A stretch of DNA of 64,000 nt from Phaeosaccion multiseriatum (GCA_965112735.1 OZ218953.1:2852001-2916000); one strand, 5' to 3'. Positions 43,208-55,588 are shown, counted from the stretch's first letter. Numbers and translations are program-made. The notes: generated by a model from the sequence alone, not told the origin.

Positions 43208-44380
43208 TTATCCATCTATTTCAATGCACTCTGTTTCGTCAAACAGGTTGCAGCATAGTTCGTATCTTTGGTAGTACTGACCATTGAAGCTGGTTATGTC
43301 CGTGGGGTCCGTGAGAAAAGGCACCCGAAGCAGCTCATCTTCAGTGCTGTAAGCCCAACTTCCAAGTGTAGTCCCGGAAGCGACTTTTGTTCCTTCAAGC
43401 TCGCACTCATCGGTCTTGTCGTACTTGTACTCGACATGAAGGAAACCCACAAAATTCTCGTAGATCTCATCCGTGCAGACAGTGGGATTACCGTACGTAG
43501 GGAATAGTTCGGTCAAGGGAATTTGTATGGTGGGGTTACTGCCGTCGAAGAAAGCAGGGGACCCTAGAAACAGTCCTGCTAAAGGGGTGTCCGTTTGAAC
43601 AGGAAAGTATTTCTCCGTGAATTTCTCCGGATCGGGCTCTCCATTTGTTTGCTTTACGAGGTTTTCGGATAACCCAACCCACAGGCTCAAGCTGAGAAAC
43701 TCGAAACACTCCGGGTAGAATTGGGTCATAGTGAGTCGAAGGGTATCCAGGGCGGGGGCCGTACCCACGTCGAAAGCAACGTTGAAGTTCACAATGTCAA
43801 ACAATTCTCCAACAAAGAAATTGGTGGGCGTAGCCGCAGCAAATTGAACTTGTAGGTCGAAGCCTCCGATCAAGTCTTCGGGGCAAAAAGCCGAAGTCCC
43901 CGTACACATCTCAACCACATCAGCACGACAGCAACTCTCCCTGCATACCTTCGTGCTCGGTTCAAAGATATCGGGGCAGTCAGGTGAAATCCCATCGCAG
44001 TAATCGGCAACATCGCAAGAGGCAGATGCAACTGCGGTGCGGCATAAAACACCACTCCCCTTTAACGAGCAGTCCTCATTACAGCACTCGTGAATTCCTG
44101 GTTCACAGTCTTCTCCTGACTCGACTCGACCATTGCCACAGACCGGAGGCTCTGGCGCTCTGCAGTCAGGGAAATCGTCCCCCTGAGCCCCGACGGTGAA
44201 GCACACCTGCATGAGGCATCCAGGGTCGTCTCCAGAATTGGCAGAGTTGCACTCGCCGGCTGGGACAATGCTGGTGTCGATTTTGACGCAGCCCGCTTGC
44301 TCATCGCAGCTTTCACGGAAGTCGTCTTCTTGTCCCCATACAAGGCCCGCGAGGAGCAGCAGACAAGCTGTGGTTCGCAT
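43208..44380 (-). CDS. Intronless secreted protein with a disintegrin-like Cys-rich domain and no metalloprotease domain
   Basis: 390-aa single ORF with signal peptide MRTTACLLLLAGLVWG; contains PVCGNGRVESGEDCE...CC...C....G.LCR...CDVADYCDGISPDCP and a second repeat CRES...DVVEMCTGTSAFCPED. Confidence 0.85.
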   Translation of the reverse strand: MRTTACLLLLAGLVWGQEDDFRESCDEQAGCVKIDTSIVPAGECNSANSGDDPGCLMQVCFTVGAQGDDFPDCRAPEPPVCGNGRVESGEDCEPGIHECCNEDCSLKGSGVLCRTAVASASCDVADYCDGISPDCPDIFEPSTKVCRESCCRADVVEMCTGTSAFCPEDLIGGFDLQVQFAAATPTNFFVGELFDIVNFNVAFDVGTAPALDTLRLTMTQFYPECFEFLSLSLWVGLSENLVKQTNGEPDPEKFTEKYFPVQTDTPLAGLFLGSPAFFDGSNPTIQIPLTELFPTYGNPTVCTDEIYENFVGFLHVEYKYDKTDECELEGTKVASGTTLGSWAYSTEDELLRVPFLTDPTDITSFNGQYYQRYELCCNLFDETECIEIDG

Positions 44381-48435: not shown

Positions 48436-48733
48436 AGGGGCATTGTGCTACGCCGACTTCACTGAGTCAGCGCCCTCTGCCGGATTCCGCGACTTAAGGC
48501 AGCAGCGGTCCTTCGGCTGAGGTTGCACGCACATCGCTAGAGCACCAATTGGTGCCGCCGTCGCCAGACCAAAGAAAGCATCTGACGAACAGATGCTCTC
48601 GAGCCTCCTGTCGCAGCTGCTGTGGGGGGGCATGGTCGTGGTCCTTGTTAAGCGATGCCCACGCAACGAGTGGCTGGCGTAGCACGTGCTTCGAAGTACA
48701 TGTCTTTCCCCCCTACCTCTGCTATCGTTTCCG

Positions 48734-50260
48734 TCAAAGCGAGGCAAAGCTCTGCCCGTCCGGACTCCAAACCTCGACCTGCGAAGCAGAGCAGAGCAGC
48801 AGAGCAGAGCAGCAGAGCAGCTTGAGGAAGGAGCATAGAGCACAGAGGAGACAAAGGGCGGCCTTGGCTGGGCTCCCTTGCCTATTGACTCGTCTCACAT
48901 TTTGGCAGCGGAAGAACTCGTTGCTGCTCAGCCGCGAGTTGCCGTAGGTCTCGCTCGCATTGCTCTCTCCTCTGTCCAGCTCGTTGTCCAGCTGAAACGC
49001 GAAACCCGCACCTCCGCCGCCCATTGCGAGGCTGTCTTCGTGCGAGATGCAAAAGTAATCGTTCCTGCCCGTCCACTTGAAGGCCTGGAAGGTAGGGTTG
49101 AAGGCGAACACGAAACTCTCGCCCGTGCCGTAGTAGCTGCATGCACGTGGCGGGTGGGTGGGACAGGGGAGGGGGGATGGCAGTGGAGGGGGGCGGGAGA
49201 GCAGCGCGAGCGGTGCGCACAGAGCGAGGAGCGAGGGGGGTGGAGCAGCTCACTTCAGATGCAGAGGCAGGAGGGGAAAAAAAAGAACATTGCCTTCTGG
49301 CACTGATTCGAATGAACACTTCAGAGAAAGAGTATGAGGACGGATGTGTGGGTGTATGAGAGAGAGAGAGCGAGAGAGACCACAAAAAAGCCCTCTCTCG
49401 AGTCATCATTCGAATTGTTTTCCTTCTGTACCTCCGGCTGTCCTCGAGCTCGTTTGCAATAAAGCCCCCGAACTTTGTTGATTCGTCGCAGTAGTCGGGG
49501 CATGTGCGTTACCGAGTTGTCGTTGAGAAGCACACGGGGACGGGAGGACCGATAGAGAAGCCGCCACAGAGAAGGGACGGGGAGGAGAATAGGGTTGGGG
49601 GAGAACAAGAAGGGAGAGGGGGCAAAGGAGTACGAGAGTGTGATTACGGTGCCCCAGGAAAATGATGGCAGGCATACAGGCAGGTAAGCACATACCTTCC
49701 ACCCCCAGCTGTCCTCGATGACGATGAGCACTCTCTGCGACTTGTCCTTCATGGCGGACATCAGGAGCGTGTTCAGGCTCGCTCCGTCTCGTAGCAGGCT
49801 GAATGACACGGACGGACGGACGGACGGACGCGAGGCAAGGGAGGAGGGCAAGGAGGGGGGGGGGCAGACGTCAACGCAGAGGCAACACGCCTGGACTCGG
49901 AGTCCCGAGCATTCTGAGCCACAGTCCCATGAGCCCCAGAGAGAGATGCTGAGCGTGCCTCGTCCACTTTTCTTGAGACGAAGCAGCGCAGGTGCCGCTG
50001 TAGTTAGTGCCCTCCGTGCTACCCCCGTCCTACCGTTGTACCTGTAGACAAGCTTCCAGGACCCAGAGTTGTCGGCAGGAGACACCGTCGCGCCGAGCTT
50101 GCGGCAATGCATCTCTGGGCAGGGCAGGGTAGGGTAGAGGTATATGGGCAGGGCAGGGAAGGGTAGAGGTTTATGGGCAGGCTGGGGCAGGTGAGGTGGG
50201 GGGGAGGGGCTCTTCCTGCTGTCCTTCCACTACAAGCACAGGACAATACGTCCGAAGGAA

Positions 50261-50298
<38 letters not shown>

Positions 50299-50299
50299 T

Positions 50300-50351
<52 letters not shown>

Positions 50352-50807
50352 CTTGTGCCGCTCGTCGCTGTGGTACGACACTCCAGTCCGGTCACACCAC
50401 AGATAGGTTCCTTGCCCTGCGGCCTGTGCTCCTCCCTACTTCTACTTGTCCCTTCTCCGTATCCTCGTCCTCCTTCGACCGATACCTGTGAGGATCTTCG
50501 AAGGCTCCTCCAGGCACAGCTGTCTACCGCCCCCCCCGGAGAGCCCCCCCCCCTCTGGCCTGCCTCTCCGCTTGGCCCGCTTCTGTGGAGAGGAGAGGAG
50601 GAGGGTAACATCGGCCTCGTCTCCCACCTCTTCGTCCTCCCCGCCCTCCGCCCTCCCCCCCCCGCCACCGCCACCACCGCTCGGGGCAGAGCCCAGGAGG
50701 TCTCCGCTGCTGTCGTCGTCGCTGCTGCTGCTGCTGCCGCTGCTCGTGCCCAGGTCGGAGGAGGGCAACAAGTCGCTGTAGTTGCCCGCAGAGGAGGCGT
50801 CTTGGTG
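48734..50807 (-). CDS. TLDc (OXR1/TLD) domain exons, probably the 3' part of the GltS-like gene upstream
   Basis: Spliced sequence WKLVYS|LLRDGASLNTLL...LIVIEDSWGWK|FGGF...S|YYGTGESFVF...FKWTGRNDYF...SLAMGGG..FAFQLDNELDRGESNASETYGN..LS...F...N|VEVW is a canonical TLDc domain. Confidence 0.9.
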
Positions 50808-51158
50808 CTGTGAAAGTAGGCAAGATGTGTGGGATACGTATAGATACGTATGGATCATGTACGAGCAGCACGTGTTGAGGGAGTGGGTGTAAGATGAGAG
50901 CCTTTAGGGGGATGAGAGGGGGGCACCAACATCTGCACCAGTCACAGATTCGGCATGGGCGTCAATTGTGTACGTAAACTTCCGTGCGTGTGCGTGTGTG
51001 TGTGTGGGTGCGTGAGTGTGAGTGCTTGCGGGTGTGTCTGGGTGTGTGGGTGTGTGTGCGTATCGAATTCCCGCGAGAACTGAAGTCCTCCACGCAAACA
51101 ACACCCTCCAACCCCCTTCTCATACTTTTGTAGCAAAACACAATTTTGTGTCGTTGTC

Positions 51159-54100
51159 TCATCTTACCTGCGAGGGCACCCGGTGCTTGATGAAACGGTT
51201 ATACACCTGCATCCACAGCACGGCGGCGCACACGCAGAAAGCGAGCGTCCAGTGTAGACCGATGGTGTCGATGAGACCAATCACCAGGGAGTTCTTGCCC
51301 TCGCTGCCAGGGATGAAGAAGAGCATCTGCCGATACGCATAGGCGAGCGGGATGGGCGTACGCAGCTGTGGGGCGGGGGGAGAGGCGAGCAGGGGAGGGG
51401 AGGGGAGGGGAGGGGGGCAGGGGTGGGGAAGACACAGTAGCGGCGTGCAGGTTGTGTCAGGCTGTCCATTCCAACGAGGCTCGAGACACCCCACATACAA
51501 ACCAATTCACCCGAGCAAGGAGCTGCGTGCCATGCAAATCTTCCCCCAACTCCGCTCCCCCGGGCGGGCCCTCGTCCTGACACTTTGCACGTGACACCTG
51601 CCACCCAACACCTGCTGCCACCTGACACGTGTGATACCTGTGGGTCCATGGCCCTCACGAGCAGCAGCCCCACCCAATTGTCTCTGAGGCAGGCCACGGC
51701 TCCGCTCCACCAGTGGCTGGGGAACATGCGGGGGGCCAGGCACGTGAAGCAATACACATTCCAACAGATCACCGCCGCCACCATCGAGGCGAACGCTGCC
51801 CCGTAACGACCTGTGTCACATGCGTCATATGAACGGAGTGTAACCGTGACCATCATTCATGCCAATAGAGGAGAAGGTCATCAAACAATCAAGTGCCGGA
51901 GGGGGGTCAGAACCACACCATCTGGTGCACGGAGGAGTGGACGTGGCAGGGCCAGATAACGCTGATCTCATTTGACGAGCGCCCCCACCCGACCCTCCCT
52001 CTCGCTACACACCATCCACTACCATCTCGCCCTCTCGTCGCCCTTTCTCTTGCCCTCTTCGCCCACTCGCTCTCCTTCTCGTTCTTACCAGGAATAGTGT
52101 TTCTGAATCTCACATCAGATATGGCGGCGCAGGCCATGAGGTCGAGGCACAGGCCGCTTAGGCGGAAGAACCAGTCCGAGTGGTACGACACCGAAGTGGT
52201 GCGGCGGAGCAGGCAGATGATGAACATTGACGTGCACATGGAGATTTTGAATAACCGGAACCCGCTGGGAGAGCGGAGGGAGGGTGGGGACGGGGGTTCG
52301 GGGTGAGAAGGGAGGGGTGAAGGAAGGGAGCGAAAGAAAGCTACAAGAGGAGGGGTAGAAGGGAGGAAGAGAGAGGCGGAGGAGGGGCGTTCCACTATTC
52401 ATTTCCTGACACCAGTTACTTACCTAATAATGTGGTGCTTGGACGTGAACTTGACCTCCTCCTCCCCCCCCCGGATGCCCACGTCCACCAGCAACGCAAG
52501 GAGAATCGCCACCGCCATCAAGCTAGCACCATCAGTATCGTCATCCATCATCATCATCATCATCATCATCACCATAATCATCATCATCATGTCGAAGTAG
52601 CCCAGCCCGCACGTCCAACAGAGAGAGAGGAGCACGAGAGGAGAGTAAGAAGCCTACTTGTACAGGCAGCCTCGCAAAACTTCCAAAGCCAATGCCCTCT
52701 TCTAAGTCAACAAGCCGCACCTGATGTGAGAACCCATGCCCGCTACCGTCTTCTCGGGGACGGCAGTCATCCCTCCAATGCCTCCTCCCCCTCCTCCGGG
52801 CTGCTGGTCCGATTGTAACTGCCGCCCCGCCCCCGCCTCCCTTCCCTTTCCACCAAGCAGCTCGATCAGGTCGTCATCAGCACCCCCCCCCCCGCCAGTG
52901 GCGCTGCTGCCGCCCTCGCCCCTCTGCCCCGTTGCTGTGCCCCCCCCCGCCCCTGCCCCTTTGCCCTGCTGATGCAGCTGCTGCAGGCTCTGCCCCGCCT
53001 TGCCCTTCGCCTGCAAGTCCTGCATCTGGATGGCACTCTGTGGCTGGGCCCTCCGCCCCTGAAAGTGCTCCTCGCTGCCGGCCTTGCCCTTGCGCCCCCC
53101 GCCATGCCTACTGCTTATCCTCCCCCAGAGACCAGAGGACCTTTCCACTCTCGCCCCTGACATTGCCCCTACGTTGGCAGCGTCTCCACCACCCCCCCCT
53201 CCCCTCCCTTTCCCCTCGCCCTCCGACATGCTGCTCTTCCTGGCTACCGCAGCGCCCCCCTCCTTCCACCGCCTGTATGACATTAGGCCGATGCCTAACA
53301 AGTGAATGGACAGAAGTGGTATGTGAGTTTGTTGTTTTGGAAAGAGATGGGCGCAGTTGAGAGGGAGAGGGAGAGGCAATGAGCGGGAACTGTGGGTCTG
53401 TGCGTGCGCGCGTGTGAAGGGTCTTGATGGCAGAGGAGCGAGGCAGTGAGCAGTTTCGGCAGTTACGTGCGTGGGGGGGGGGGGTGGCGAAGGGGAGTCC
53501 CTGCAGACTGTATTCGAGTGAAATGCCAAGCGACAAGAGAGCAGCTGACTCTCCTCCTTCCCTCCTCTCGAGCCCTCCCTCTCCCCCTCTTCCCTCCCTC
53601 ACTCACTCACTGGTCCACCCGCCCACACACTCTTATCACTTACCCATTCACCCGCCCGTCCACCACTCACTCACCCACTCATTCACCCTTCCACCCACTC
53701 ACTCGCCCATTCGCCCATTCACTCTCCTTACGCACTCACTTACCCAACACCCAAGCCCCCACCCACCCACCCAAGTCCCTAACTCCCTCACCGGCGGCGA
53801 TGGAGACGATCGTCCCCACGGAGTCCGCAAGGCGAATGACGTCATGTGCCCACTCCCCCACACCGCGCGCGCTCGTATAGCTGCAAGAGACCCGAAGGGT
53901 AATGGGGGAGGGGGGAAGAGAGGACTGTTACAGAAAATTCCTCGACCCTCTCTTTCTGTGTGTGTGTATCTCAGCCACTCAGAGGGCCTACGGGGCGCAC
54001 CTCACGCGGTCCCTCCCCGTCTCGAGGCCCAGCGTGACGAGCGGGGCCAGCAGGGGGCTGACGTCGTCGTTCCAGTTGCGGAAGATAGAACCCACGAACA

Positions 54101-54367
54101 GCGCTGCTGCGGTTTGGCCCCACATGAGCACCTGCCGCAGCAGCAGCAGTTGGTGATACAGCGGAGCAGCAGCAAGCAGTGGTGAGGATTTGTTGCGATG
54201 ATGATTAACAGCGTGCCCACCCCTCCTTTACCCAAGAGCCAGTGGTCGCAGTACCTGCCGTGCTGGCCCCACTACTCTCACCTGGGAGTACACCAGCAGC
54301 GGAAGCGCCTCGTGGAAGATGCTGCAGAAGAAGCAGTGGGGAGGGGAGGCGCGAGGGGGCGCGGACA

Positions 54368-54424
<57 letters not shown>

Positions 54425-55082
54425 GAGAGGTGCGAGGCGGCAGGAGAAACAGTGTGTTAGCACGGGATCAGTCACAAAGAACGCATGGGATCATGGAAAA
54501 CATTATTCTCCTACGCAAAGCCGTTCTTACTTGTAACATATGGCTCGGGTGTGGGGGACGTTCTTTTCTGCAGCAGCAAAGCCTAGGATGAGCCCGGCGT
54601 AGGCAAAGCTGTGAGGAGGAGAAGAACAAGAAGAAGAAGACGACGAAGAAGAAGAGGCAGACAGATGATACATAGGGCATAATAGTTTTGTTGCATAGAG
54701 GGAGGTTTAGACGTTGATGAGTGAAAATTTTCCTTTGCTGTTAGATCTCCACCTCTCGCAGGCCTCACCTGATGAGGTTAGCCTTTATTTCGTAAATGCT
54801 GCCCTCTACTGCTTTATCCATCTCACGGCCTGGGAAAGCAGGAGGGACAGAGAGCGAGGAAGGCGATAATCAATCAATTGGGGTTGTTCTCACCCAACCC
54901 CCTGTGAGAATGACTGACTCTCAACACTCACTTAAGGCTGGAGTGACCACCGCAAGGATAAGAGCACCAAGGACGCCTGCGAGAACGGCAGGCGGCATGG
55001 TGATGTGCAGGCGGGAGGGGATGAAGGTCGCCAGGTGCTTGGACACGCCCAGCAGGAGACACAGAAAGCCGAGCAGGGCCAT
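51159..55082 (-). CDS. Sodium/glutamate symporter (GltS/ESS family)-like multi-pass membrane protein, divergent; probably continues by splicing into the TLDc exons
   Basis: Phase-consistent exons give LLLGVSKHLATFIP...MPPAVLAGVLG, NLISFAYAGLILG, YSQVLMWGQ, LSGLCLDLMACAAISD, LAPRMFPSHWW, GLLLVRAMDP and AYAYRQMLF, the motif order of bacterial-type GltS proteins. Confidence 0.72.
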
Positions 55083-55588
55083 CGAGTAGTAGTGCCTTCA
55101 TCAAAAAGAGGTAGAACCGAGGGGGGGAAAGTGGTGGGAAGTGAGATCAACGGCACCGAGAAGACGGAACGAAAAAAGCGACAAGAGCCGAGAGAGTACA
55201 AGAAACACCACCCATAGAAACACCACCTCTCTCGCTCAGCGACCCCTACTTACGATGCCCATTCTTCCAAGGTCTCTCTATCCTCGCTTCTCTCTATACC
55301 TGACCCCATTGAGTACACCTCTCCTCCCGAAAAGGAGGAAAATCAGACCCGCTCCCGTCGCCGTCTGGTGCCATCTTGCTGCCTCTTCACACAGCCACGT
55401 CAAGTGCAAGGGATGCAGTTGTGAAAGACTTGTAGGGATAAAGTGACTCGCGAGGGATATACGGTTCATGAGATGACAGGGCCGTACAAACCCCCGGGTA
55501 GGGAGAGAGAACTCTAATTATTTGAAGGGGGTACAACCCTGTATAAAGGGGTGGGAGCTTGAGGTGGGCGGCTCCCGCAGGGGAAGCC

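Follow-up and report, generated by a model that had tools for sequence, protein, structure and literature searches.

Among regulators of the V-ATPase, the TLDc proteins form the newest class, and the cue for their action is an open question; to our knowledge, every TLDc protein studied is soluble or lipid-anchored. All five mammalian members co-purify with the V-ATPase, for which the TLDc domain by itself, taken from Ncoa7, Oxr1 or Tldc2, suffices (PMC8608904), and yeast Oxr1p and Rtc5p bind the V-ATPase and promote its disassembly, Rtc5p being kept at the vacuole by N-myristoylation (PMC11066047). The bacterial transporter GltS, of the ESS family, has long been held to have the topology and elevator mechanism of CitS (PMC12344293). 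Here we describe a gene that appears to join these two kinds of module. It lies at 48734-55309 on the minus strand of a 64,000-nt stretch of Phaeosaccion multiseriatum DNA (GCA_965112735.1 OZ218953.1:2852001-2916000; hereafter the window, to whose positions all coordinates refer) and very probably encodes one fused protein. As predicted, this protein would have four parts: a ~610-aa membrane domain, a disordered central loop that interrupts it, a ~100-aa charged linker and a C-terminal TLDc domain.

The gene was read on the minus strand over 48500-55300, with exons assembled by hand and by script. Spliced in silico, the model comprises 18 exons (E0-E17; Table 1) and encodes 886 aa in one open frame; each of the 17 introns has GT..AG ends and a length of 102-497 nt, and the frame is kept without an internal stop. 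The initial annotation placed the gene start at ATG 55082, which proves to be internal, because a further 5' exon (E0, ATG 55309) precedes it and matches the conserved N-terminus of homologues. E0 was found by tblastn of homologue N-termini, which match at 55288-55256 (SEDRETLEEWA). Its phase 2 end, joined to the acceptor at 55096/55095, restores the frame into E1, and the resulting product ...LEEWASHYYSMALLGFLCLLLG fits the conserved family N-terminus ...LE.WA..YG....GFL..LL..GK.

Whether the locus holds one gene or two turns on intron 11. E11 ends ...HRVPSQ at 51168 and is followed by GTAAGA, with the GT at 51167-51166; left unspliced, the frame runs V-R-stop (TGA at 51161-51159). The acceptor ctactttcacag precedes 50807, 360 nt past the donor, and the frame resumes there in phase 0, E12 leading through five more GT..AG introns into the TLDc domain and ending at TGA 48736-48734. 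The splice signals, spacing, phase and Ser/Gly-rich linker first described for this junction (donor 51167, acceptor before 50807, 360 bp, phase 0) are all present. Since all introns of the gene fall within the range given above, a gap of 360 nt is of typical intron size. We infer that intron 11 is spliced in P. multiseriatum; the fused reading of the locus is very probable, given the intron-like size and signals of the interval together with the fusion seen in its relatives.

These relatives form a family. Searching E11 alone (66 aa) against 1.84 billion representative proteins returned 58 matching proteins, many of them 740-860 aa long; in these, the match lies at about residue 500-590 and is followed by another 200-300 residues. 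Pfam TLD is present in 25 of the 35 longer matches (best E = 3e-42). Blastp of the spliced model against the 58 matches finds the N-half, the C-half and the TLDc domain in order in >20 proteins; the full alignment with homologues is collinear from the first exon to the last, and the membrane halves are 43-57% identical to those of orthologues, and the TLDc domain is 46-55% identical. Two genes that merely lie side by side could not give a collinear three-block match in >20 fused homologues by chance. Brown algae and raphidophytes supply the named members and unnamed marine sequence sets the others, and there are gene models of the family in Ectocarpus, Pylaiella, Undaria, Cladosiphon, Scytosiphon and Heterosigma (the orthologue in Ectocarpus sp. 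CCAP 1310/34 is CAB1103752.1, 833 aa). The Chattonella subsalsa relative, P0003, is an MMETSP0947 transcript encoding 776 aa as a single open reading frame (ORF), 159-2489 on a 2864-nt contig, in two samples. Another, P0005, is encoded by one uninterrupted ORF on 2.5-kb Logan contigs of two runs, and P0188 (841 aa) is found on 3-kb and 26-kb contigs, as a single ORF on the 26-kb contig. The fused protein of this family is specified by one mRNA. The introns flanking E10 occupy the same positions in the Ectocarpus homologue, which also has a phase-0 intron in its linker, 15 residues further on than intron 11; given this offset in an unalignable linker, we do not claim that the two linker introns are the same.

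Every full-length homologue found through E11 carries a TLDc domain behind the same membrane domain, which bears out the proposal in the initial annotation of one protein with transporter and TLDc parts; with separate and fused orthologues as the alternatives in an architecture search, the full-length orthologues are fused, several as single ORFs. The E11 matches that seemingly have no TLDc domain are fragments or prokaryote-style gene calls. On one metagenome scaffold (L006:875-3472), a prokaryote-style gene caller has broken up an intron-poor relative, calling a 633-aa membrane 'protein' separately from two TLD fragments, the TLD pieces lying 142 nt downstream of the membrane ORF (P0006) on the same strand; owing to a run of N and a frame change, this scaffold serves for adjacency only. 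Because prokaryote-style callers split family members, database counts of members without TLDc are inflated. A 2155-aa model from Nemacystus decipiens (P0202) shares a 90% cluster with the 811-aa Cladosiphon orthologue, and is probably a merged gene model in the Nemacystus annotation.

The TLDc domain is complete, as first noted, and of OXR1/NCOA7 type. E16 alone scores 67.5 bits on Pfam TLD (PF07534, gathering threshold 24.5 bits; E = 1.7e-18, profile positions 81-162 of 170), and residues 689-861 of the spliced model (numbering before E0) align with the whole TLD of P0003 (606-769, profile 3-169) at 54.6% identity over 174 aa. Among solved structures, E16 is closest to TLDc chains of NCOA7 and OXR type (E = 1.9e-18), and its matches to Skywalker and yeast Oxr1p are much weaker. 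The motifs RDGAS, FGGF, MGGGG and VEVW are present in the window, and in the part aligned to NCOA7 the GGGG block is retained, as is most of the sequence around it. In Ncoa7, mutation of G815, S817, G845, G896, L926 or E938 abolishes or weakens V-ATPase binding (PMC8608904). The linkers of homologues, as here, are charged and unconserved.

The membrane domain is, with high confidence, a remote homologue of GltS/ESS, on the strength of three independent results: a bridging bacterial sequence, named neighbours in the ESM Atlas and the fold matches of an AlphaFold2 (AF2) model. Fold results were obtained from residues 1-560 of P0003 and profile results from relatives; Pfam was run on the exons of the window singly. 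Profile A2, built from 21 algal membrane domains and searched against 5.8 billion proteins, recovers the fused family and P0197, a 445-aa protein set among compact bacterial-type genes on its contig (E = 3.2e-20, both halves aligned, with a striking common stretch around hairpin 2), which itself scores 44.4 bits on PF03616 (gathering threshold 26 bits). By language-model features, PF03616 is carried by 29 of the 30 nearest named ESM-Atlas clusters (scores 0.93-0.94, 201-206 features in common). The AF2 model (mean predicted local distance difference test, pLDDT, 79; predicted template-modelling score 0.79) is confident outside the disordered central loop, and predicts two halves, each with a re-entrant hairpin (176-198 and 460-485), as in the ESS/2HCT elevator fold. 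In the Atlas, the fold nearest to this model is that of a GltS-family cluster (template-modelling score 0.60 by query and 0.72 by target, 414 residues), and its best solved matches are CitS chains (0.56-0.61 by target, Foldseek probability 1.00); the PDB holds no GltS structure.

Direct comparisons count against this homology. The spliced 590-aa membrane part has no significant match to E. coli GltS by blastp or phmmer, and hhalign of the family profile against that single sequence gives a probability of 0.4%, aligning only the N-terminal LLLG.K...IP..V.GG. The PF03616 threshold is missed by the algal membrane domains, with one match among 35 homologues (E = 0.0045) and 16.1 bits for the Ectocarpus protein P0063. 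A word-index search with E. coli GltS found near-identical enterobacterial sequences only (82-99% identity), unusable for a diverse profile, and NCBIfam on the 21 membrane domains yielded noise only. The GltS-like fold named in the initial annotation is upheld by the A2, Atlas and AF2 results; the match to the PF03616 hidden Markov model that it had looked to did not materialize, the window exons giving none when scanned singly and the relatives falling below threshold. The membrane domain is below Pfam-level membership of PF03616.

In elevator transporters (CitS and related structures), the hairpin tips form the substrate and ion site. These tips are of GGHG type in E. coli GltS (SGGHGTG) and in bacterial P0197 (AGGHGT). 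The GGXG hairpin-tip motif of ESS is replaced both in the algal family and in the window copy; in the family, hairpin 1 carries G-L-E-[AT]-G-x-D and hairpin 2 carries G-D-A-[LM]-G-H-S, and in the P0003 model M-G-H (472-474) forms the exact tip between helices 460-471 and 475-485. GGXG motifs are important for function in ESS/2HCT, as the title of Dobrowolski & Lolkema 2009 has it (cited in PMC12344293). Hairpin 1 is kept in the window copy. At hairpin 2, its LRDN stands against GDAMGHS in relatives, a four-residue in-frame loss that removes the near-invariant Gly-His (G473-H474; P0003 numbering here and below), and close by it has Ser for N458 (FPSHW), Gly for R463 and Arg for K500. These five positions belong, with 20 others, to the invariant or near-invariant set of the family C-half; W397, L406, D407, W443, F456, G478, L479, R483, D486, P494, A496, P507, K512 and W539 are otherwise kept. 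DNA contigs show no other letters in the hairpin 2 region. With GGXG replaced throughout the family and the hairpin 2 tip shortened here, the family seems unlikely to carry out classical Na+/glutamate symport, and this copy still less so.

Which way the TLDc domain faces can be predicted from the P0003 model. There, the N-terminal segment is acidic; Lys and Arg abound in the loop that follows the first transmembrane helix (TM1), in the central loop and in the tail beyond the last helix; and six crossings lie between the central loop and the C-terminal tail. Given the positive-inside rule and this even number of crossings in the C-half, the central loop, the C-terminal tail and hence the TLDc domain should face the cytosol; the central loop of GltS is cytoplasmic, according to a title cited in PMC12344293. 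From this position the TLDc domain would bind the V1 sector of the V-ATPase on the same membrane and shift its assembly or activity. The transporter-derived domain would act as a permanent membrane anchor for TLDc, and might also be responsive to a solute or ion, its elevator movement being passed on to TLDc. A function of this kind is suggested here because OXR1, NCOA7, mEAK7, Oxr1p and Rtc5p act on the V-ATPase; by this analogy, we would put the chances of a V-ATPase link for the fusion protein at about even. A bolder and rather improbable extension is that the family serves as a 'transceptor' for the proton pump, having lost classical symport, sensing a luminal or cytosolic solute or ion and switching V-ATPase assembly or activity on its own membrane through the covalently attached TLDc domain.

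Several features of the junction tell against a single gene. The stop three codons into intron 11, and an ATG at 50858 in a frame that is open for 32 codons upstream of the E12 acceptor, allow two adjacent genes produced by lineage-specific fission, a transporter-like gene ending at TGA 51161-51159 and a soluble TLDc gene starting at ATG 50858, 51 nt upstream of the acceptor. The claim in the initial annotation that the TLDc exons have no convincing start exon was therefore too strong, this ATG leaving a separate TLDc gene compatible with the sequence alone. In addition, four sequencing runs from one sample contain the locus (96-99% of sampled words, introns included), and their contigs, aligned to 50400-52300 (1901 letters), are DNA-like, with no splice joints and no differing letters. 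Fission, however, would leave only ~300 nt for a 3' untranslated region, terminator, promoter and 5' untranslated region together, and none of the signals AATAAA, ATTAAA or TGTAA occurs between 51170 and 50400. The same interval has a strong donor, a pyrimidine tract with CAG and a typical intron size; the putative N-terminus of the separate protein, MIHTYLYVSHTSCLLSQ, is a translated pyrimidine tract; and all full-length relatives are fused. We consider two genes very improbable. The in-frame ATG 50858, open into E12, could instead belong to a fused gene with an internal promoter in or near intron 11, giving an extra, short, soluble TLDc-only isoform, an arrangement that is compatible with the best explanation. 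It would resemble the short isoforms of mammalian NCOA7 and OXR1 (PDB 7obp, 'NCOA7-AS', is the NCOA7 short form, essentially TLDc alone), but the ATG sits in a typical 3' intron end, and such an isoform is unlikely.

The departures at hairpin 2 bear on what the fused protein does. Lying at several otherwise invariant positions, they count against the proposed function, in that the membrane domain of the window copy may work differently or be under relaxed constraint. Another reading makes the gene a decaying paralogue, fused in structure with a membrane domain no longer under selection; the clustering of the Gly-His loss with the Asn-to-Ser, Arg-to-Gly and Lys-to-Arg changes at hairpin 2 favours decay, as does an unusually long, low-complexity central loop. 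Yet the reading frame runs through all 18 exons, with canonical splicing and without an internal stop, the TLDc domain is preserved in full along with the remaining invariant residues, and the hairpin 2 deletion is itself in frame, all of which makes decay highly improbable. TLDc domains have also been linked to oxidative-stress protection, which counts against a V-ATPase role. The membrane domain could alternatively be a working secondary transporter (for an amino acid, organic anion or cation) that TLDc regulates or protects, for example against oxidative damage, with no part for the V-ATPase. The elevator fold is complete and confidently modelled, both family hairpins have strongly conserved polar residues (G-L-E-x-G-x-D and G-D-A-L-G-H-S), and TLDc proteins were first described as oxidation-resistance factors. 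But the GGXG hairpin motifs are not retained, the hairpin 2 tip is lost in this copy, and all TLDc proteins tested so far bind the V-ATPase (PMC8608904); a working transporter of this kind is doubtful. Overall, one gene for a fused membrane-TLDc protein is the best explanation of the locus and, we believe, a likely one; the V-ATPase link proposed for it stands at about even odds, as above.

Table 1. Features of the fused gene model in the 64,000-nt window; hairpin 1 was placed from the P0003 AF2 model and alignment, and the hairpin 2 shortening from alignments and the P0003 tip position (472-474).
Feature	Position	Strand	Description
E0 (added first exon)	55254..55309	-	ATG 55309-55307; encodes MGSGIERSEDRETLEEWA; donor GTAAGT at 55253, phase 2
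E1	54932..55095	-	TM1 with conserved ...LLLG.K...PPAV..G..G motif; ATG 55082 internal to E1
E2-E6	54829-54769, 54608-54531, 54321-54282, 54131-54001, 53880-53792	-	Remainder of membrane-domain N-half
Re-entrant hairpin 1 tip	54032-54009	-	LGLETGRD; predicted
E7	52721..53294	-	End of TM5 and ~180-aa Gly/Lys/Arg-rich low-complexity central loop, predicted cytoplasmic
E8-E11	52522-52424, 52264-52089, 51810-51638, 51365-51168	-	Membrane-domain C-half: hairpin 2, last TM helix, end ...HRVPSQ
Hairpin 2 shortening	51677..51688	-	LRDN for GDAMGHS-type
Intron 11 (contested interval)	50808..51167	-	360 nt, GTAAGA...CACAG, phase 0
E12	50486..50807	-	Ser/Gly/Asp/Glu-rich ~100-aa linker; TLDc start EEPSKILT at 50510-50487
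E13-E17	50114-50042, 49798-49696, 49472-49432, 49136-48899, 48778-48734 (including stop)	-	Complete OXR1/NCOA7-type TLDc

Other features of the gene and its surroundings were recorded alongside the model. The central loop (52721-53266) is a low-complexity Gly/Lys/Arg/Gln stretch in a single exon, about twice the length of that in homologues. Intron 16 (48779-48898, minus strand), within the TLDc domain, is 120 nt long, in frame and stop-free (ORF 48734-49111), so its retention would give a 40-residue insertion, not a truncation. Long microsatellites are found in intron 4 ((GT)n, 54369-54419), intron 8 ((GAT)n, 52541-52590) and intron 12 ((CTGT)n, 50263-50350), all on the minus strand, and an imperfect CA-rich tract lies in intron 11 (~50978-51064), where short-read contigs break. 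At 55374, 65 nt upstream of ATG 55309, an ATG in another frame opens a short reading frame that overlaps 55309 and stops at 55298-55296 (minus strand); this may be an upstream ORF or else a different first exon that uses the donor CAG|GTATAG (region 55301-55374). A divergent ORF begins ~250 nt upstream of ATG 55309. The large ORFs flanking the gene have no informative Pfam matches apart from that at 43211-44380 (minus strand), a 390-aa ORF with a disintegrin match just over the cut-off (PF00200, E = 1.9e-08, 35.4 bits), unusual for an alga.

No relevant paper emerged when open-access papers and bioRxiv were searched for TLDc together with symporter, algae, Ectocarpus, diatom or stramenopile, and the word 'transmembrane' is absent from a 2026 TLDc review. 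That the architecture was undescribed, as the initial annotation supposed, is correct for the literature searched, but the family was already present, unannotated, in public proteomes (CAB1103752.1 and others). We rate the family as one of TLDc regulators whose integral-membrane partner domain is new, with sequences that are public but unnamed and an architecture absent from the literature searched. Spanning brown algae, raphidophytes and further marine protists, the family offers a natural system in which TLDc is joined to a polytopic membrane domain of ligand-binding type, an obvious and testable input module, and it shows an ESS transporter fold of bacterial type put to new use in eukaryotes, its hairpin motifs altered. 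Were the transceptor proposal true, it would provide a direct, one-polypeptide link from solute status to organelle acidification in brown algae and their relatives. There is also a consequence for annotation: automatic pipelines leave these proteins unnamed, and prokaryote-style callers cut them in two.

The closest systems are the orthologues from Ectocarpus, Chattonella, Pylaiella, Undaria, Cladosiphon, Scytosiphon and Heterosigma, which likewise have the three blocks in the same order; unlike the window copy, they retain the G-D-A-[LM]-G-H-S tip and have shorter central loops, and databases list them as 'unnamed protein product' or hypothetical. E. coli GltS (ESS, PF03616) resembles the family in its two domains, cytoplasmic central loop, two re-entrant hairpins and N-terminal LLLG.K...IP..V.GG. 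The family differs from it in its replaced GGXG motifs, introns, eukaryotic host and TLDc fusion, and in an extra stretch after hairpin 2 whose closing element, a full TM helix, should place the C-terminus on the cytosolic side. CitS (Na+/citrate, 2HCT; PDB 5a1s, 5xat and 9lsh) has the elevator fold and is the closest solved match of the modelled membrane domain, although identity is only 12-15% with E-values of 6e-3 and weaker, and CitS belongs to a different family and has no TLDc domain.

On the TLDc side, OXR1 and NCOA7 (PDB 7uzg, 7obp, 8ar6 and 4acj) share with the window protein a C-terminal TLDc domain preceded by an acidic stretch, but they are soluble, with LysM/GRAM-type N-terminal parts, whereas the N-terminal part predicted here is a polytopic membrane domain. 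Rtc5p of yeast and mEAK7/TLDC1 of mammals also hold a TLDc domain at the vacuole or lysosome membrane beside the V-ATPase; their anchor is a lipid, whereas the window protein would be anchored by an integral, transporter-like domain with the potential to respond to a ligand itself. A GltS-family membrane domain joined to a soluble partner is known from the TAXI-GltS fusions of Lachnospiraceae (PMC12344293). Those fusions are bacterial and their partner is an N-terminal, extracytoplasmic substrate-binding protein; the partner in the window protein is C-terminal, and is predicted to be a cytosolic regulator.

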